NCBI GenBank assembly: GCA_011109175.1
Contig: RDEW01000057.1
Location: 217,206 to 261,906 of the forward strand
DNA: 44,701 bases
Reading direction: 5' to 3'
Source: Dicyema japonicum
Taxonomy: Eukaryota; Animalia; Dicyemida
Shown here: piece after piece, positions 4,095 through 44,701 of the stretch
Layout: every line of letters starts with the position of its first letter
How positions within the stretch are numbered: position 1 is the stretch's first letter
Program-made: the position numbers and the translations under genes
The notes under the pieces: model-generated
Told to the model about the DNA's origin: nothing
What the model saw: the letters and a program-made list of their open reading frames with translations, nothing else
Database searches by the model: none

Positions 4095-5526
4095 ATGAGA
4101 CTTTTCACGCCTGAGATTTCGTGGCATGAGAGAGAACCAGTAAACTCATTGGACTATCAACAGAAATACAAGGATTTCCCACGACTAGGGACAGTGGCTG
4201 TAGATGGGGCTGCACGTGTAATCTATAAATAATAACTATAAGATATGGAAAGTCAACATCAGTGAAAGTGGTAAGGTTGATGTTGAATATTTATCAACAA
4301 TTCGCAAAGACTGTGGTGCTCTCAATACAATCAGATTCTCCCCCGACGGTTTTTTGATTGCTTACATTTGCAGGTGAATATGTGGCCTTCTGTGGAGTCT
4401 GTTTGATTTGTTGTTATTATTAGCTGCCGTTATTTACATTGGACATCAGTCTATCATTGAAATTAAAACAGCCGGTTTTGGACAGATTGAGTCAGATAAG
4501 GAAACTTGGATATCTCGTAAGTCTCTGAGGTGGCACGTGGCTATATTATTAGGGGGCATTTGTACGACATTCAGTCTCTGCAGTGGTCAACCGACTCACA
4601 GAGAATTGTGTCTGGTTCTATTGATAATACTTTCATCGTGTGGAATGTTACTAAAGGTTTGTGTCATCAATCACACAGGCGAACCCATTAAAGTAGTCAG
4701 GGACAGTCGTGGATATGTTATGGGTGTGGCCTTTGACCCACGTGGACAGTTTATTACCTCAATTGGGAATGATAGAGTACTCCGTGTGTATAATACAAAA
4801 CTAAAAATGATAAATTCAGTGTACAATTACGTGAATGATGATTTAACCAAACGGAGACTTTGGTGTGATGAAAGTCACTGCAGTCTGTTTCGTAGAATGG
4901 AGTTTAGTAATGACGGACAATTACTTGTTGTCCCTTCTGGTTCTGCCCAACAAACAAACAAACGGGAACCTCAATTCGCTTCCTACATCTTTTCGCGGAA
5001 TAATTTTGCCAGGTTTGTTTATATTACTAGTGATAGACCTATTCTTCAGCTTCCCCACTTTTCTGTCCCCACCTGGGCTGTCAGATTTAACCCAAAGCTT
5101 TATAAACTACGTCAACCAGAGAATACTGGTCGTCCTTTGGGTTTACTGATTTGTGACTGTCAGGAAGTACTCCCTATCGACAAATATTTGCTGTTGCCTC
5201 ATTGAACGATGTCCTACTTTACGATACTGAACATATCACTCCCTTTGCTTTTATTGGGGACTTTCACTGTACGCCACTGAGTGACCTTGCTTGGTTTGGC
5301 GGTTTTTTATTGTAGGTCTCCTGATGGCAGGATTTTGGCTGTCTCCTCAACTGACGGGTTCATTTCCTTTGTAGAGTTTGAGGAGGATGAGTTGGGTAGT
5401 GAGTACACTGAGGCTGTCTGTGATATTGTTGATGATGAGGACATTGAAGAGACTATAATATCTGAGCCTAAGAGAAGAAAATTTGAATTGTCTACTTTGT
5501 CATCATTTAAATCCTCTGATGATTAG
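4095..5526 (+). CDS. CHAF1B: Chromatin assembly factor 1 subunit B (CAF-1 p60/Cac2), WD40 protein, 414 aa, 9 exons
   Basis: Exons 4095-4217, 4243-4348, 4374-4400, 4424-4529, 4553-4656, 4679-5012, 5037-5140, 5164-5293, 5316-5526 (1245 nt, in frame). Eight GT-AG introns of 25, 25, 23, 23, 22, 24, 23, 22 nt. Motifs MRLFTPEISWHEREPV, SLRGHLYDI, DRVLRVY, FRRMEFSNDG, PYRQIFAVAS, SDLAWSPDG, SSTDGFISF and a C-terminal KRRKFELSTL resembling the Asf1-binding motif. Confidence 0.95.
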
Positions 5527-21426: not shown

Positions 21427-21529
21427 AAATACTTAACATTATTAATTAATTTTTTAAATAAAATTTTATTTGTGCCTCAAGTTTTAGTGAAAATTAGGTT
21501 TGGATTTAATTATTTTTTTTCAAAAGAGG

Positions 21530-22950
21530 ATGAAAGATCGTCCGAGGTGGACCACAGCCAAAAGGATTTAATCAACCTAATAAAATACTATGTGAAAAAA
21601 TCCCATAAAGACCATAAGAAGTCGGATGTATTCCCGAAATATCTCAGTAAACCGAAAAAGGAACCGGATACGATTCACTTCACTGTAAACGACGTGAAAT
21701 ATGCATTGAAATTCATTAAAACAACCAAAATAAAATACTATGTGAAAAAATCCCATAAAGACCATAAGAAGTCGGATGTATTCCCGAAATATCTCAGTAA
21801 ACCGAAAAAGGAACCGGATACGATTCACTTCACTGTAAACGACGTGAAATATGCATTGAAATTCATTAAAACAACCAATTCTAATGGACCGGATAAGATC
21901 CTCCTAAAGAATCTATGGAATCGTTGCATTAACGAGGATATTCAACCACTCCATTAACAAAAATTATATTCCAGCCTTATGGAAGCTTGCCCACCTACGT
22001 CCAATTTTGAAACCCAGTAAAGTGATAAAGGACCCAGCTTCATACAGACTGGTCGCGTTATTGTGTTCGATCTCCAAAATTCTAAAAAGGCTGGTTCTTG
22101 CGAAAATCAAAAATTTCTTCTTGGACTTGTCATTTCAACATAGTTTTAAAAAGGAGAGGTCTACTTCGACCCAATTATCTGAATTGACTAACTTTATACG
22201 ATATGGTTTCTCGAACAGGTCGGGACATATGAAGAATGTACTTTGCTCCATAGACGTCCATAAAGTTTCGACTCTGTGTCAAGGAGGATTTTTACTCGGA
22301 AAATTGACCAAACAAAGATCCCTGGAAAGACAGGTCGGGACATATGAAGAATGTACTTTGCTCCATAGACGTCCATAAAGTTTCGACTCTGTGTCAAGGA
22401 GGATTCTTACTTGGAAAATTTACCAAACAAAGATCCCTGGAAAGCTCAAACTCTGGCTAGCTAACTTCCTTAGTGGTCGGAAGGGACGCATCTGCATTCC
22501 CAAGGATCCCCTTTGTCTCCAGTTTTATTCAACCTATTCATGGCGAACCTCCCCACTCCAGACTCCGAAAATGACATTATTCTAACTTATGCCGACGACA
22601 TCGTAATTGCGTCACGCCATCAGGACATCCAAATTGCCACTTCGAAATTGCAAGAAATCTTGGACTGTCTTGACGAATGGCTATCGAAGAATCGCCTAAC
22701 TGCCAGCAGTGAAAAGTCCGTCACAACCCTGTTTACTTCAGACAAGAGACTGGGAAGACGGACGGTCGAACTAAAGGCAAACAATGAAGCTATTCCTTTC
22801 AGAAAATCCCAAAGGATTCTTGGGGTGACTTTTGACATGCGTATGTCATTCTCTCCTCATGGTGAAAACGTAATTACGAAATGCAAAAAAGAACTAAGAA
22901 ATGCCTCACAGGCTTATGGAAGATCGAATAGCATTCTGTTTTGAGCACTG
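21530..22950 (+). mobile_element. I/Jockey-like LINE RT pseudogene
   Basis: SNGPDKI, DPASYRLVALLCSISKILKRL, SIDVHKVFDS, SPVLFNLFM, LTYADDIVI, RILGVTFD. Confidence 0.9.
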
Positions 22951-25883: not shown

Positions 25884-25912
25884 ATTTAAAAATTAATTAA
25901 TTTAATTTGTAA

Positions 25913-26189
25913 TATAATAACGAGTAAATTAACTAATTAAGCGTATCTTGATCCAGATTGTTGGTAACCCCTCTTCTAAGAGAAGAAGAGGGTGCCATAA
26001 CCTCCCTGTTACTCCGCATCTCCACATCAGATTCAGTCAAAATATCTCCGTTAGAGTCCAGTGGGCTGTCCTCACGGCATGCCAGTTCCACAAGTTGGGA
26101 GGTAGCAGAGGCGTACTCTTCATCGTATACCTTCATCCCATGCTTATGTTCAATGGGCATACTTTCGAGCGTTCTCTTCAGCACAACCG
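25913..26189 (-). mobile_element. 3' end of an R4-like retrotransposon (ends at an N gap)
   Basis: LKRTLESMPIEHKHG C-terminus, homologous to 31411-31620 and 29269-29637. Confidence 0.85.
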
Positions 26190-27160: not shown

Positions 27161-27677
27161 ATGAGAATTACTAAGTATATAATGAGAAATAACTAAATAT
27201 AGATAAAACATTATTATAAATCTCGCATGAAACTACATCCCTGATAGACACTAATTGCCTAAGCGGCCATCGGCCGCTGTTCTTCTGATAGATATTAATT
27301 CCCTATGCGGTTACAGATTCTTCGATCAATGTCATTAAGCTATTGTCTTCCTTTATTTTTTTTATTTTTTTTGAAATAAAACCCGATTTATTTAATAAAA
27401 AAATTTAATTTCCTTTATTTATCTCAATTTTTAAAGTCTTTATTTATGAACTTTATATTCTGATCCATCCTCCTGTTCTACAATAACAAGATTATTGGAG
27501 AATTTTGAATACACGTCAAAAACAGTGAGTAACCAAGAAAATGAATCATTACAGGTTTTAAATCTACAAAATTAAACCATAAGAAATACCTTTTTAAGTC
27601 GATAAAATCTACTTGCAATTTTTCATTCGGGAAGTTAGAAAAAATATTACAAATCTCATACAGGGTTTTCCTATTTA

Positions 27678-27777
27678 TTTAATAACTTTGTCAAAAAATT
27701 TAATAACTTTGTCATAAAATTTAATAACTTTGTCATAAAATTTAATAACTTTGTCAAAATGTTTAATAACTTTGTCA
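27678..27777. repeat. Five 21-bp subterminal direct repeats (TTTAATAACTTTGTCA core)
   Basis: Cores start at 27678, 27699, 27720, 27741 and 27762. The first overlaps the TIR. Confidence 0.9.
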
Positions 27778-27832
27778 AGGGTCAAATTAAAAGAAACCAA
27801 TTTTATAATTAATTGAAAAAAACAACTATAAA

Positions 27833-28883
27833 TTAAAATTCTTCATAAGCCAATGCTTTAACTAAATAGCTCCGCATGTGGCTATACAAATTATTGCACA
27901 CATCTGATGGAATTTCTCCGATGTTTTGGATTGCGTTTATTAATTCCTCAGAGTTCCTACAATTTTTCTTTTTGATGTTATTTTTCCAAACAGAAAAAAA
28001 CTCTTCAATTGGATTGAGTTGAGGAGTATAAGGAGGCAAAAAATACAATTCATACCCTATACACGTTAAAAATTAATTGGATACCAGTTCCGAATACAAC
28101 ATTTTTTAATTGCTCGCTCTTGTGAATTGATGCATTGTCACATATCAATACCATGTCTTAAATATAATATATAACCATACATTTTTTCCCTGCATGTTCA
28201 AGCTTATAATTAAGCTGTATTACAAAATCAATGAACGTCTCTGCACGATAAGGGGAGGAATTGATTTCGTAATGTAAAAGGCCATCCACAGAAATAGCAG
28301 CACAAATAGAAAAATTTTTCTCTCTTATGTTTCTAGTACATTTTTTCGGAGTAACTCCTTTTATAGATCTTCCAAATTTGGATCTCATAGAACAATTGAC
28401 TCCCATTTCGTCTATAAAAATAAGCCGTTGATGATCAATTTCAATTATTTTTCTGGCAAATCTATATCTTTCTTCCATATTTATTGTAGAATTTCTCGCC
28501 ATAGGTACAAATTGAATCTTTTTAAAACTATATCCAAATGTATCTAGCGTCCTATTTATTGTCGATAAAGATACATTTTTTCTTTGCACATCAAATAAAG
28601 AATTTTTTAAATTCTTCAGAGTAAATGAAGCATCTTCTTCAATTTTTTTAGTCAAAAATAAGATGTCCGATGAATTAAGTTTTTTCTTTCGTCCACAATT
28701 ATTTTTTGTTGAAGCAAAACTTCCTGTATTTTTGTATTTTTTGACGATAGAAACAACTGTCTGATAGTTAATACAGATGTCTTCGAATATTTTTGAATAA
28801 GCCAACCCTGCTTCATATTTATTTATAATAAGTTTTCGGTTATCCTCGGATACAGTAGTATTTTTGTTTTTGTAACTATTCAT
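27833..28883 (-). CDS. DD34E transposase, 332 aa, 3 exons, apparently intact
   Basis: Exons 28883-28181, 28156-28085 and 28056-27833 (999 nt). GT-AG introns of 24 nt (28180-28157) and 28 nt (28084-28057). Motifs IFIDEMG, CDNASIH and LPPYTPQLNPIEE, with 34 residues between the second D and E. Confidence 0.92.
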
Positions 28884-29240
28884 TTAATTCAATTTGCGCT
28901 AAAATTTGTATTTATAGGAACTTAATAATCCAATAAATATAAATAATGATCTAATAAATATAAATAATNTGAAGCAAAACTTCCTGTATTTTTGTATTTT
29001 TTGACGATAGAAACAACTGTCTGATAGTTAATACAGATGTCTTCGAATATTTTTGAATAAGCCAACCCTGCTTCATATTTATTTATAATAAGTTTTCGGT
29101 TATCCTCGGATACAGTAGTATTTTTGTTTTTGTAACTATTCATTTAATTCAATTTGCGCTAAAATTTGTATTTATAGGAACTTAATAATCCAATAAATAT
29201 AAATAATGATCTAATAAACTTTGAAAATAAATTGATTAAA

Positions 29241-29641
29241 TTTAATAACGAATAAATTAACTAATCAATTAATTAAGCGTATTTTGATCCAGATTGTTGG
29301 TAATCCCTCTTCTTCTCTTAGAAGAAGAGTGTGCCATAACCTCCCTGTTACTCCGCATCTCCACATCATATTCAGTCAAAATATCTCCGTTAGAGTCCAG
29401 TGGGCTGTCTTCACGGCATGCCAGTTCCACAAGTTGGGAGGTAGCAGAGGCGTACTCTTCATCGTATACCTTCATCCCATGCTTATGTTCAATGAGCATA
29501 CTTTCGAGCGTTCTCTTCAGTACAACCGATTGGATGTAAGTCCTCGTTGATTCTTCAATAGATAATTTATCCATATGATTCTTGAAGCATCTTGAGACAA
29601 CTCCATCCCATGTCAAAACCACTGGAATAATCTTCACTTGG
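29241..29641 (-). mobile_element. 3' end of an R4-like retrotransposon nested inside the Tc1 element
   Basis: KIIPVVLTWDGVVSRCFK..QSVVLKRTLES. The 3' UTR is shared with the 25913 copy. Truncated at N29642. Confidence 0.88.
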
Positions 29642-29920
29642 NCAAAGTTATTAAATAAATAGGAAAACCCTGTAAGATTGTTTCAGAGTTGACGAGAATA
29701 AGCAGACTTCACAATTTTGGACCACACCTCTAATTAAAACGTTCGCCACATAACTTTTCCAAAATGTTTTGTCCACAATGGGCTTGCCGATGTAAGTTTT
29801 CTGCAAGCAAAGTCATAAGAGCATCATTATCAAACGTTATAACCAGCTTGTGGTTATTTAATTGGTCCTAAGATATAAAGATCCATCGAGTAATATACTT
29901 GTGTGTATATATAACTTGGA

Positions 29921-31374: not shown

Positions 31375-34300
31375 AATATTTTAACGAAACAACGAGTCAC
31401 AAGTAATTAATTAATTAGCTAATCTCCTCTTCTTGGGGCCAACGTCAATTGTCAGTATAGGTGTGTTTTCGTTGTCGCACAACCCACATTCCGAGACTCC
31501 CCTTGGTCGACATTCCTTATCAGCTTCCTCCTCATCAGGTATCGATACTCCATGTCTATCTTCAGCTTGCATGCTCTCCAACGTCTTTCTCAATACTAAC
31601 GTTTGGATGTACGCTTTCACCCTTTCCTCCAGTTTGAGGGCATCCAGATGGNNNNNNNNNTCGATACTCCATGTCTATCTTCAGCTTGCATGCTCTCCAA
31701 CGTCTTTCTCAATACTAACGTTTGGATGTACGCTTTCACCCTTTTCTCCAGTTTGAGGGCATCCAGATGGCCCTTGAAGAATCTCGAAACAATCCCATCC
31801 CAGGTAATGACTACAGGGATTATTTTTACCTTTGCGCAATGAATACATCCGAGTTCGTTCGCCAGTAAGTCATACTTATGGAACTTTTCCACCTCGACTT
31901 GCTTGAGGCAGTTTTGGGACGTGATCCCAATTTCAACGAGAGTAATCGTATTACGCACCTTATCATGAACGAAAATATCGGGTTTGTTATTCTGTACAGC
32001 CGTATCTGTACTAATCGTTGTGTCTACACGAATCTCCACAAATTCATTTAAGACAACAGATTGGACTAAGTGGGTCTTCAGTTTCTTAGTTTTTCTTATT
32101 CAATATTGACGGAATAGGTGTAAGTGAATACATCTGACCACCTCGTTATGCCGCCTGAGATAAAAACTATTCAGCATTCTCCCACATCTAGTTGCAAGGT
32201 GATCAACGGTCTTCTTTCCTGAGTTACAATGTTTGCACTTGGCTTCTCCATTATCAAAAAACATGTTACGATCCTGAAGCAGACACAGCCTTCCTTCGGT
32301 TACAGGAGAATGATTTCCATGAACTAACCACCCTGAGGATTCAGCAATATTCACTTCGGTATCTTTCAGACACTCAAATAGAATAGAGTGCAGCGATTTC
32401 TCTTCAATTTTTCCCAGTAGATATTCATGTTGTATTTCCATCAATTTCAACATTGTCAAATCCTTCACATTTTCAATGTTGTACTTTCTTGAGATGAATT
32501 CTACGATAGTGGCCATGTGTATTTTCTTTGAATTAATGACCCGTAGAATTCCCGCTCTTCTTAGGCAGTAATTTGCCTTATGTTCCAAATCACTATAAAA
32601 TTGGAGGAGCATTCTTTCTGCTTTGTTACTGACTGACTCGAGGCCTCTTCCAAATTTATTTCTTGGTAGATAAAGTCTTTCTTTGTTTGCCGGTTGCAAG
32701 TGGATATGACTGTCCATAAGAATTCTGCGAATATTTTTATCAATCTGTTCAAACTCTCCAGGTTCGATATCAATCAATCCAATGTAATAGTTGTAAAGGG
32801 AGATTGCATACTCATTCATAGCTTTAAACAGGTTCACTGAGTTTAAATCCGTCTTCGTCAAATTTTTGATCCGCTTAGATACTTCTCCATAGATTTTATT
32901 CATAATTTCTCCTTTAAGAACATTGCTGTTCTTATCTTCAAGAACTCCCAAATATCGGTATCCATCCAATCCATCAAGGAAACGAGCTTTCCCAGACAAG
33001 GACTTGACATTTGTTGCAGATTTGTCAAAGTTCCTCTCCAACCCGGCTGCATCAAAAAACGAATCAACTTCTTCCATCATCATAACCATTGAATCACTTT
33101 TGTGAGAAAACAACTTTATATCGTCCATAAACAGAAGGTGATTAGTGGCATATGTTGGCTCTCCATTTCCCGGGCTTCCCATAGTTACTTTAGGAAATTT
33201 TCCATTCAATATTCGGCTAAGGGGGTCCATTAACAAAGCAAAGATCTGTGGCGAAAGAGAGTCCCCCTGTAGAATTCCTCTTCTTATTCTAATCTCCCCC
33301 AACACTTTTCCTTCCAAATTCAGTCGTATCTTCCATTTCCCAACAAGTTTCGTGATAAAACTCACAATCCAGAAAGGCAGGCCAGAATTCTGGAGCACTT
33401 CGCCCAAAAACTCGTGGTCAACGGAATCAAATGCTTTTTTAACATCGATCCAGGTAGAACATAAGTTACTTCCATTTCTTTGATTTAAACATTGGTTCAC
33501 CAAAGCTTGTTCTTTGGCTCCTTGACACATCCTCCGAGTTCCCAATTGATTATCACTTAAGAGATCGTACGATTCAATATATTCAGATAATTTCTTGTTC
33601 ACACACTTTGTCAATAGTTTATAGAGATTAGGCATACAAGTAATTGGTCTTAACTCCTTGGGTGAATTACATACGTCCACTTTTGGTATAAGATGTGTTA
33701 TCCCCGTGTAGAACCAATCACCAGGCGTATATTCATCATTTATGATCTTCTGAATCTCCTCGCAAAGATGTTCATGAATCGAAGTAAAACTTTTGATAAA
33801 GAAGTTATAAACTCCGTCGCACCCAGACGCTTTCCAATTTGGAAGCATCTTGATAGTATCGACGATCGCTTCCTTTGTAAAATCGGCATAAGAATTTTCA
33901 GATCCAGTCACTCTCTTGTTCAACAAGAATTTGCTCTCCTTTCGATCACTCTCATTCCAAATGGTTGTCCAAAAAGGTAGACATTCCCCTTCATCGAAAT
34001 TCAGCACTCCCTTCTTATTATCTCCACTAATATTTCTGTAGAACCGCCTTCTATTCAACTCGAAGCACCAATTGGCTCTTCTAAATCCCTTTCTTGATTC
34101 ATAAATTCTCAATTTCTTCTCAATTATCTTGATTTGATCACGGACATAGGAAGCAATTCTCTCAAATTCTCCCCTCTTCGATTTCTTAAATCCATATGAA
34201 CATAGAGTATTGCGCACTTCTTCATCAAATTGCTTCTTCCCGTTCATTTCACTAGCCATTTGAATTTGCTCAAGTTGTTTCCTAAGTTTAGTGATTTTTC

Positions 34301-35000
34301 CTTTCATGGACTCTTCCCAATTACTTTTAGTGCTATTCCTCCTGGTAAGACTTTCATAGGTGCACTGCCCAGCATATATGATATCTGTGATATCATTGAT
34401 ATCCAAATTAGGCAAGGAATCTATATATTCCTTGATTGCCGCATTAATTCCATTCAAAATATCCTTTTTTATCAATTGTCTGGGAATCTTCCTAGTAGGC
34501 ATGCGAAGGTTCCTTCCCATTGTAATTACTTTCCCAATTTGGCAACAAAACTCTTTAAAGCATTTTCTAAAATTCGAAATTTCTACCTTCTGTATTTCCC
34601 CAACTGGAAGACCACAGAGTGATTCACTCGAATTTGAAAAGAGCAAGCTCTTGAAATTGGTAACGGATTTCGATGTCCCGAATCTTTGGTTAAAAGCATT
34701 CGTAATCAGAGGCCAACCACCACGGGGCATTCTCTTAAATCTGGATTTTGTAGCTTCAACTACTTCCACAGCCCATTGTCTCTTGTCCACAGTGTGAACT
34801 TTGTCGACTACGCATTGCAGTGAGAGAAGATGTTCTTTAAGATCAGTATTGACAACTTTTTGGGTCTTGGACAAGTCATCGACCACATTCTCTACGTTTC
34901 TTTTGTTTTTTCTTTTAGTAACTTTCGTAGATAGGTCGATTGAAACATTTTTTCTTCTTTTCTTACAAGAAACAGCCATGCCCACAACAACAAAAAATTC
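31375..35000 (-). mobile_element. Near full-length R4/Dong-like RT-RLE non-LTR retrotransposon; ORF 34985-31411, about 1151 codons, one internal TGA
   Basis: RT motifs LPNWKASGCDG, LRPITCMP, GAKEQAL, WIDVKKAFDSV, GILQGDSLSP, FMDD and YRYLG. CCHC knuckle CKHC..DHLATRC, RHNEVV and restriction-like endonuclease KPDIF..VEI. The frame continues through TGA 32100-32102. Collapsing the 119-nt overlap at the N gap (31652-31660) keeps the frame to the stop at 31411. Confidence 0.93.
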
Positions 35001-42250: not shown

Positions 42251-43139
42251 CACCTATTAGGCATTGAACAGTTAGATTGGGGTCACAATTTATAAATAAT
42301 AATTTCTTGGATGCTAAGTAGATAGACCCCATTAGAATCGTCACATATCGCTTGTTTCTGATTTTTCAGATCTCTATAAGGTATAGTTAATTCACTGACC
42401 TACGCCTGTTCTTGAAAAAATCAATGTATTCGATTGAGTGATACTCACATAATCTCTTGCATGTGATTGGAACAATAAGCGAGTTGAAGGGTAAATAAAT
42501 CTCTCACTATGACATTGATAATTTACTGAGAAGGAATCTGATTTAGTTAAAGCCCTCGTGATTTTAAGATCCCACTAATTTACTTCAGTTTAGTCTATTG
42601 TAGACTGTGTAACTCTGACATAGCATATATGTAACAAAGTTAAGTTAGTTGTCAGTTAAAGCACATTCGCGTTACAAGTAAACACTGTTTATGGCTTCGC
42701 TTGTGCTACTTTTTTGACTATCCATTCCGTTAGCCTTCTCCGTCCCTTTCGTTGTCGTCTGGTCTCCTGATAAAGCCAGATCGTCTGCATCCATCCGTTC
42801 GCCTCCGATCACAGCATTTTTTTTGTTTTAAATGTTAAAGTAGTGTAAAAAATTGTTTGTTAAGTCCGTGAAGGTCAACAAAATGTATTTTTGTGTATTT
42901 CACTGTAGTTAGACATAATCCACTATATAATTCCCAGTCTTTGTAGAATCCTTCTCGACATTCTTGTATAATGCCAATTTATCTAGTATCAATTCTGTCA
43001 TACACGATAAACTTGTTTATTTAAAAATTTAAATATCACTTTTTATAATGAATAAAAAATAAATATTTTTTAATTTATAATTTTAAATGTATAAAATTAA
43101 TTAAAAAATAATTTTTATATTTAAGAAAAACTATACGTC

Positions 43140-43348
43140 ATGATAACAGAAATAGAGCACTGGACCAGAGATAGAAGATAGAATCTCTCAAGGACAACGC
43201 TAAATTCTACGAGGCTGTTAAACAGATAAAAGTAAAGAGATTCCGTCAACCGATAATGATAAAATATGACAAATGAACGCAGATTGAGGACCAAAGGGAA
43301 GTGGCGGAAATTATCGCTGCCTAGTTTGGAAAACTTTTCAATCTTATC
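43140..43348 (+). mobile_element. RTE-like LINE fragment abutting the 28S sequence
   Basis: IESLKDNAKFYEAVKQIK..REVAEIIAA*FGKLF parallels the pre-RT region of 8502-8951 (KFAENIADHFELLF). Confidence 0.55.
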
Positions 43349-44701
43349 ACACGGACCAAGGAGATTACCGTACTAGCAAGTCTAATGGAGTTATTCCATG
43401 CGGCGCAATGAAAGTGATTAGATGTGACGATATATTCGGCAACATACACCCCTTTTTGATTCTACGGTTGTAGAGGGAGTGATAGCTAGTGCGTTAAAAC
43501 CCGAAAGATGGCGAACTATACCTGGTTAAGATGAAGCCAGTGGAAACACTGGTGGAGGTCTATCGCGGTTCTGACGTGCAAATCGATTGTCGAAGCTGGG
43601 TATAGGGGCGAAATACTAATCGAGCCATCTAGTAGCTGGTTCTCTCCGAAATTTCTCTCAGGATAGCTGGCGCTCGAGACTAGTTTCATATGTTAAAGCG
43701 AATGATTAGAGGATTTGTGCTTATACGGGTGCAAACTATTCTCAAACTTTAAACGTGTGAGAAGTGTGACTAACTTGAGTGTAGTCATACGTAAAATAAG
43801 GGTGCCAAGTGGGCCAATTATGGTAATCATGACTGGCGCTGTGGGATGAACCAAACGCCTGGTTAAGGTGCTTGACTAGACGCACACAGGATACCATAAA
43901 AAGTGTCAGTTGATTATGACAACAGGAAGGTGGCCTTAGTAGTTGGAAGCCTCTAAGGAGTGTGTAATAACTCACCAGTCGAATTAACTGGCCTTGAAAA
44001 TGGATGGCGCTGTAGCGTCTGACCTATACCGGGCCGTTGTGGCAATGTAAGTTTAACTTGCTAAAGATAGGCCACAACGAGTAGGAGAGCGTGGAGGTAG
44101 CGCAGAAGCCATGTATGTGAGTACTGGTGGAGCTGCTCTCTAGTGCAGATCTTGGTGGTAGTAGCAATTACTCAAATGAGAACTTTGAGGGCCTATGTGG
44201 AGAAGGGTTTCATGTGAACATGAGTTGGACATGAGTTAGTCGGTCCTAAGCACGTTGAAAAGTTTTGAAATGGCTGTTTTAAAAGTGCGAAAGGGAATGG
44301 GGTTAATATTCCCGAACCTAAGAAGGCTGTTTATGCGGTGACGCTGTTGTAACAGTCTAAGACGGCAGGTGTTCTGGGAAGAGTTATCTTTTCTTTTAAA
44401 GGGTCGATTTCTCTAGAAATGGTTTAGCCAGCGAAAGAGAAGTTGTTGATCATAGAGATCTTATCCGTAGAGCATTGCAGTTTTTGCTGTGTCCGGTGTA
44501 TGTCTGACGTTTCATAAAACGCCTGTAACAGTTTAACAGTCACTTGGGCCGTACCAATAACCGCAGCAGGTCTCCAAGGTTAGCAGCCTCTGGTGAATAG
44601 ATAAACGCTGATAAGGGAAGTCGGCAAAATAGATCTGTACCTTCGGTAGAAGGATTGGCTCTATGGGTTGAGCCTATATTACTCTATTTCTGTTGTGATA
44701 G
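43349..44701 (+). rRNA. 28S (LSU) rRNA, partial: 5'-truncated and running off the window; possibly an orphon or pseudogene
   Basis: ACACGGACCAAGGAG, CCATCTAGTAGCTGGTT, GGATAGCTGGCGCTC, GTGCAGATCTTGGTGGTAGTAGCAA, AACCGCAGCAGGTCTCCAAGG and GATAAGGGAAGTCGGCAAA occur in the correct order. No 18S, ITS or 5.8S upstream. Confidence 0.92.

Follow-up and report, generated by a model that had tools for sequence, protein, structure and literature searches.

Two micro-introns appear to split the transposase gene of a Tc1-like transposon in the dicyemid Dicyema japonicum

The stretch of DNA analysed here, 44,701 nt from the genome of the dicyemid Dicyema japonicum (GenBank assembly GCA_011109175.1, contig RDEW01000057.1, positions 217,206 to 261,906 of the forward strand; the whole of it, which we will call the window, is numbered from its first letter), contains on the minus strand, between 27661 and 29672, an element whose ends and predicted protein identify it as a Tc1/IS630-type DD34E cut-and-paste DNA transposon. 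Both termini are perfect inverted repeats, as stated in a first-pass annotation made from the letters alone; they are identical at 30/30 positions, and 0 such matches are expected by chance in dinucleotide-preserving shuffles of the window. A TA dinucleotide stands outside each end (Table 1). In a list of open reading frames (ORFs) the transposase gene appears as a 241-aa ORF (28883-28158) followed by 34-aa and 71-aa pieces in other frames. However, when two segments of 24 and 28 nt are excised (introns 1 and 2 in Table 1), the pieces merge into a 999-nt ORF of 332 codons and a stop, which is the uninterrupted DD34E enzyme that had been claimed for this splice pair. The ORF probably looks broken on account of two micro-introns, and the observation holds at the level of the sequence, apart from the corrections made below. 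We consider it highly likely that this is a Tc1-like DD34E copy residing in a tiny-intron animal, with its transposase gene split by two micro-introns of host format, both of which would have to be spliced.

The three exon pieces match the Pfam DDE_3 domain in the right order and bring together the catalytic triad D158-D241-E276, with spacers of 82 and 34 residues, which gives DD34E (the 34-residue spacer spans intron 2, and its count depends on the splice). The second aspartate lies in the 72-nt middle exon, as had been noticed from the start. Exon 1 also matches HTH_SB over residues 7–55 and HTH_Tnp_Tc3_2 over residues 78–145, both slightly below Pfam's own cut-offs, and residues 1–55 align with the PAI subdomain of Sleeping Beauty, whose structure has been solved (E = 0.0024). 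With the inverted repeats and their TA flanks, these features uphold the family assignment of the first-pass annotation. An alternative description of the same stretch as a 'retroviral-type integrase with a 26-nt intron' is ruled out, the domain being the Tc1-type DDE_3 and the introns 24 and 28 nt long.

To collect relatives, exon 1 was run as an HMMER query against the complete set of 1.84 billion representative proteins. This returned 2045 of them, the best at 43% identity and most of the full-length ones 330–342 aa in length. A word-based protein search with exon 1 found no match, a blank which reflects the search method, given the 2045 relatives from the HMMER scan; exact-protein look-ups of the 241-aa ORF, of a host zinc-finger ORF and of the long interspersed nuclear element (LINE) ORF found none on record. 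The columns of D158, D241 and E276 are invariant across the eight best relatives (330–342 aa), as is the DN column, and in none of these sequences does the alignment with the spliced protein have a gap within 15 residues of either junction. Exon 3 aligns to all eight without gaps and at 41–53% identity, which is above the identity of exon 1. The relatives that carry a name, at 31–35% identity, are 'Tc1-like transposase' of Anopheles species and one protein of the fish Scleropages, while the remainder come from metagenome contigs; the named ones are thus animal, and the likeness to microsporidian and fungal elements that had been suggested at first found no support.

For the analysis of the splice sites we enumerated every GT..AG segment of 12–89 nt in the region and scored the resulting proteins with a profile for which only the eight relatives were used. 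No single GT..AG excision in the region restores the frame. Pairs that do so number eight, and among these the runner-up reaches 341 bits, against 382 for the proposed pair. If any end letters are allowed, several neighbouring registers of the same lengths score equally well, since the junctions sit in poorly conserved loops and are flanked by short repeats, but exactly one register per intron has GT..AG ends. At local base composition the joint chance of one GT..AG register for each intron is ~7e-4, or ~1e-4 if GTA..AG is required, and the chance of 332 stop-free codons is ~6e-14. In their boundaries, length, frame restoration and collinearity with the relatives both segments therefore behave, as predicted from sequence, like spliceosomal introns of the host class, in agreement with what had been proposed for them. 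The starts of the introns slightly resemble the start of the next exon (intron 2 reads in frame GIQLIF against GYELYF). Birth of the introns by tandem duplication of the neighbouring exon was considered as a candidate and dropped, as the resemblance is not significant in shuffling (p = 0.09–0.9).

Retention of either intron would be costly for the enzyme. If intron 1 is retained, translation meets a stop 7 codons on, the nearly immediate stop that the first-pass annotation had pointed out, and the predicted product of 241 aa consists of the DNA-binding part and the first aspartate only. If intron 2 is retained, the frame shifts, a stop follows 10 codons on and the predicted product lacks the glutamate. 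Neither product is thus expected to be able to catalyse transposition, and both messages carry premature stops.

The window also shows the format of host introns, in a conserved gene. This is CHAF1B (chromatin assembly factor 1 subunit B) at 4095-5526, plus strand, where six GT..AG introns of 22–25 nt have to be removed to give the complete frame of 460 aa; its exon pieces align in order to residues 43–82, 160–310, 312–352 and 355–386 of human CHAF1B. These introns were worked out by hand, a generic micro-intron scan of the whole window being too noisy for use. One of them (4530-4552) holds the palindrome CACGTG. The median intron of dicyemids is 27 bp and two thirds are shorter than 30 bp (PMC6543705). 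Among animals, introns below 30 nt are found only in D. japonicum and in myxobolid myxozoans, where little more than GTa and AG is left of the splice signals (PMC13644364). The two transposase introns agree with this host format, being below 30 nt and of the form GTA...AG. The GC content of the window is ~36% and that of the D. japonicum genome 36.7% (PMC6736024).

At the 3' end of the element five 21-nt repeats stand head-to-tail, the outermost overlapping the terminal repeat, and these are probably extra binding sites for the transposase. The 5' end, in which an assembly gap and a LINE fragment are situated, has a single 21-nt unit and no mirror-image array. In a relative from a metagenome contig (L004) both ends carry units of this kind, so that the 5' set of the present copy was probably displaced by the LINE or is hidden in the gap at 29642. 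A further match to the 21-nt repeat (family D3), at 18/20 positions of a 20-mer, lies ~80 nt outside the 5' terminus at 29750-29769 and may be left over from an older copy or be due to chance. No further copies or fragments of the element were found within the window, where it is present as a single copy.

The first-pass annotation had called the transposon intact, which does not describe this copy, as it contains a LINE fragment, Ns at 29642 and 28969 and a duplication of 249 nt. The LINE fragment, 5'-truncated and nested in the element, shows 90% DNA identity to 25885-26189, and the protein of its 122-aa ORF shares 60% identity with the LINE tail at 31829-31665, which follows shortly after a 961-aa reverse-transcriptase ORF (32100-34985). 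The duplicated segments are 100% identical at a spacing of 260. Of the ten N sites in the window, 6/10 have 100–300 nt duplicated across the N, which is what contig ends joined with their overlap unmerged look like, and because the same overlap pattern is seen at 28969, the 260-nt tandem duplication there is most likely an assembly artefact. Tandem duplications adjoining an N in this genome should be treated likewise, for example in the ORF region 21472-21957 and in the LINE tail 31547-31746. With the LINE, the artefact and the gap taken together, the span of 2012 nt is therefore not the real length of the element, and a gap separates the 5' repeat from the body. After subtraction of the duplication and of the LINE fragment ~1330 nt are left.

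Table 1. Coordinates of the element's parts and of other marks in the window.
Feature	Coordinates	Strand	Evidence or remark
5' terminal inverted repeat, 30 nt	29643..29672	-	exact match to opposite end; TA at 29673-29674
Single N, assembly gap mark	29642	.	exactly between 5' inverted repeat and LINE fragment
Nested LINE 3' fragment (ORF end and 3' untranslated region), 422 nt	29220..29641	-	same orientation as transposase; not part of the transposon proper
Duplicate of 5' leader and first 58 codons	28959..29218	-	28970-29218 = 28710-28958; joined via N at 28969
Exon 1, two helix-turn-helix domains for DNA binding; D158 (FIDEMG), first Asp of the triad	28181..28883	-	start codon 28883-28881; Pfam DDE_3 profile positions 1-72
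Predicted intron 1, 24 nt, GTATGG...TTTAAG, phase 1, in-frame TAA	28157..28180	-	excision restores frame
Exon 2, 72 nt, second catalytic Asp D241 (CDNASIH)	28085..28156	-	Pfam DDE_3 profile positions 81-100
Predicted intron 2, 28 nt, GTATCC...GTATAG, phase 1	28057..28084	-	retention shifts frame
Exon 3, LPPYTPQLNPIEE with catalytic Glu E276 (NPIEE), C-terminal end, stop 27835-27833	27833..28056	-	Pfam DDE_3 profile positions 108-146, E = 6.6e-08
Five 21-nt subterminal repeats, head-to-tail	27677..27781	-	repeat families D2 and D3; outermost overlaps inverted repeat
3' terminal inverted repeat, 30 nt	27661..27690	-	match to opposite end; TA at 27659-27660
N sites	6330, 7685, 8391, 14389, 14619, 23210, 26190, 28969, 29642, 31652-31660	.	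assembly gap marks
CHAF1B introns	4218-4242, 4374-4397 (tentative), 4530-4552, 4657-4678, 5141-5163, 5294-5315	+	frame restoration

Two neighbours of the element may be described here. The LINE at 31522-34985, on the minus strand, has the 961-aa ORF with a reverse transcriptase and then a CCHC-like motif, a frame break at ~32040-32100 and a following piece of 140 aa whose PD...D/E...K-like motif hints at a restriction-like endonuclease. A GT..AG segment of 45 nt (32110-32066), picked up in a crude scan, could bridge the break, a simple frameshift being equally likely. At the end of the window (42988-44701, plus strand) lies the 5' part of a eukaryotic 28S ribosomal RNA (rRNA) gene (1070 bits), which continues past the window end. 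Relaxing the threshold still revealed neither 5.8S nor 18S rRNA in the 8 kb upstream of it, an unusual situation for a normal rDNA unit.

How would such an element work? In the mechanism that we propose, the host spliceosome would remove both introns from the pre-mRNA to yield the message for the 332-aa enzyme, whose paired helix-turn-helix domains would recognise both kinds of repeat, terminal (30 nt) and subterminal (21 nt). The enzyme would then excise the element and paste it into a TA. Messages left unspliced would end early and give truncated proteins without catalysis. It is a fair inference from the literature that ordinary animal spliceosomes would be unable to remove introns of 24–28 nt, and it is plausible that this dependence locks the element to the spliceosome of its host. 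Regulated intron retention of the P-element type, or a role of the 241-aa product as an inhibitor, is speculation.

Several other explanations of the locus have to be weighed. The copy could simply be dead, its gene having been disrupted by two small insertions of an ordinary kind that resemble introns in size and in their GT..AG ends by coincidence. A nested LINE fragment is indeed already present, and the profile of the relatives leaves the exact boundaries open, with several registers scoring alike. However, over the 332 codons there is no other stop or frameshift, GTA..AG stands at the sole fitting register of both segments (the small chances of both are given above) and the two lengths fall within the narrow intron range of the host, so that we regard a dead copy as very improbable. 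Introns in transposase genes are also common in domesticated copies (10.1101/656579), and the gene could be a host gene derived from a transposase and no longer mobile, similar to the TLEWI genes of bivalves; but those are DD36E and have no inverted repeats, while here perfect inverted repeats, TA flanks and subterminal repeats are all in place, which makes domestication scarcely credible. An assembly chimera has to be taken more seriously, as the N stands precisely at the inner edge of the 5' repeat with LINE sequence immediately beyond it, the N sites of the window are typical unclosed gaps and the 5' end is without the 21-nt array of the 3' end. The 5' inverted repeat could then come from one copy and the body with the 3' repeat from another, the two being united across the gap at 29642. 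On the other hand, the two ends are oriented and spaced as would be expected of a single element that contains a nested LINE. We think a chimera unlikely, if far from negligible, and it would affect the status of this copy alone, leaving the family and the nature of the introns unchanged.

The reading of a Tc1-like transposon with two spliced micro-introns remains, in our opinion, the best explanation, and a few points weigh against it. The 5' end crosses a gap and holds a LINE, and so the ends may derive from different elements and this copy may be immobile. Both splicing and activity are deduced from the letters of the DNA. The nearest relatives are only 36–43% identical, and closer relatives that bear introns could exist unseen. 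The duplication of TA had been taken as a sign of recent mobility, and while TA is indeed present at both flanks, 2 nt are weak evidence for recent movement.

The relatives also bear on the origin of the introns. In all of the eight best the ORFs are uninterrupted, and for three of these (P0004, P0008 and P0009) the lack of introns was verified in DNA contigs which hold whole elements with their own inverted repeats; none of the relatives checked carries these introns. Of these contigs, L003 has element ends TACAGT and no interruption, L004 (1-1618) is a complete intronless relative with 99-nt terminal repeats made of ~22-nt tandem units at both ends, and L002 (1-2871) contains two related intronless elements next to each other, with inner repeat copies of the end motif. 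Two shortened relatives that end near an intron site were followed up as candidates for a shared intron and rejected: P0036, from a Tara Oceans contig, is a decayed copy with a one-base frameshift, and P0136 has a TAA close to the contig end. Because the relatives checked are intronless, gain of the introns is favoured over shrinkage of old ones; the suggestion that they had been 'gained or shrank' to the host format thus finds support in its first half, while shrinkage fits less well. Most likely the gain took place in the element's own lineage, after entry of the family, as far as timing can be inferred from such comparisons. That they were born inside the transposon after its entry to the dicyemid lineage, in an animal which would have been creating introns below 30 nt recently and repeatedly, is a possible account that we hold tentatively.

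The introns could instead be real but acquired elsewhere, if the element came by horizontal transfer from a different tiny-intron organism, for instance a myxozoan or ciliate. Some of the more distant relatives do appear to come from hosts that read TAA as sense (the frame of L007 continues past a TAA), Tc1/mariner elements with predicted introns are known from Paramecium (PMC3464196), and the 36–43% identity of the nearest relatives leaves room for unseen intermediates. Against this, the eight best relatives are uninterrupted, including the three verified in contigs with their own inverted repeats, the two shortened ones turned out to have a frameshift (P0036) and a TAA (P0136), and the transposase ORF is without in-frame TAA or TAG and therefore does not use a ciliate code. 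Acquisition from another host is in our view quite improbable.

If gain of the introns within the lineage is accepted, the intronless relatives make the element a clean case for the study of how and when tiny introns arise. Should the birth have been internal to the dicyemid lineage, transposon copies would be a datable record of intron birth, and these elements would rely on a spliceosome of a kind found in hardly any other animals. If both introns do have to be removed, this would be the first animal transposon that we have found whose enzyme depends on the splicing of introns below 30 nt, and such dependence could stop the element from functioning after transfer to ordinary hosts. There is also a practical consequence, as ORF-based annotation will label copies of this kind broken, and the repeats of dicyemids, and perhaps of myxozoans, would be undercounted precisely for elements that are still able to encode their enzyme.

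With Tc1, Tc3, Minos and Sleeping Beauty the element shares the DDE_3 DD34E domain, the paired helix-turn-helix N-terminus, the inverted repeats, the TA target and an enzyme of ~330 aa. Tc1, Tc3 and Minos reportedly have one intron each, which is longer (~40–60 nt) and placed near the 5' part of the gene. In contrast, here there are two introns, of 24 and 28 nt, and within the catalytic domain they flank the second aspartate. Such lengths are below the size thought manageable for ordinary animal spliceosomes. The literature on dicyemid transposons was searched for an intron-bearing Tc1-like element and no mention of one was found. The term 'undescribed system', used in the first-pass annotation, is nevertheless too strong, as Tc1-like elements with introns are known (10.1101/656579) and introns in Paramecium elements have been predicted (PMC3464196). 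The TLEWI genes of bivalves (Puzakov et al.) are Tc1-like and have 2–5 spliceosomal GT..AG introns, with an exon-intron structure common to the copies; they are DD36E, have no terminal inverted repeats, have few copies and are regarded as domesticated (10.1101/656579). Our element, a DD34E type whose inverted repeats are perfect and flanked by TA, is not a TLEWI. The Paramecium elements Anchois, Sardine and Thon (Arnaiz et al. 2012) are Tc1/mariner elements in a host with tiny introns, and the introns in their transposase ORFs are predicted only (PMC3464196). They differ in having a ciliate host, in being germline-limited and larger and in containing several ORFs, whereas the host here is an animal with the standard genetic code. 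The metagenome relatives P0001-P0009 (loci L001-L005) stand closest, being of the same size and 36–43% identical over the full length, and the terminal repeats of L004, built of ~22-nt tandem units, are like the 21-nt repeats of the element; it is the uninterrupted ORFs of these relatives that set them apart from the dicyemid element with its two micro-introns.

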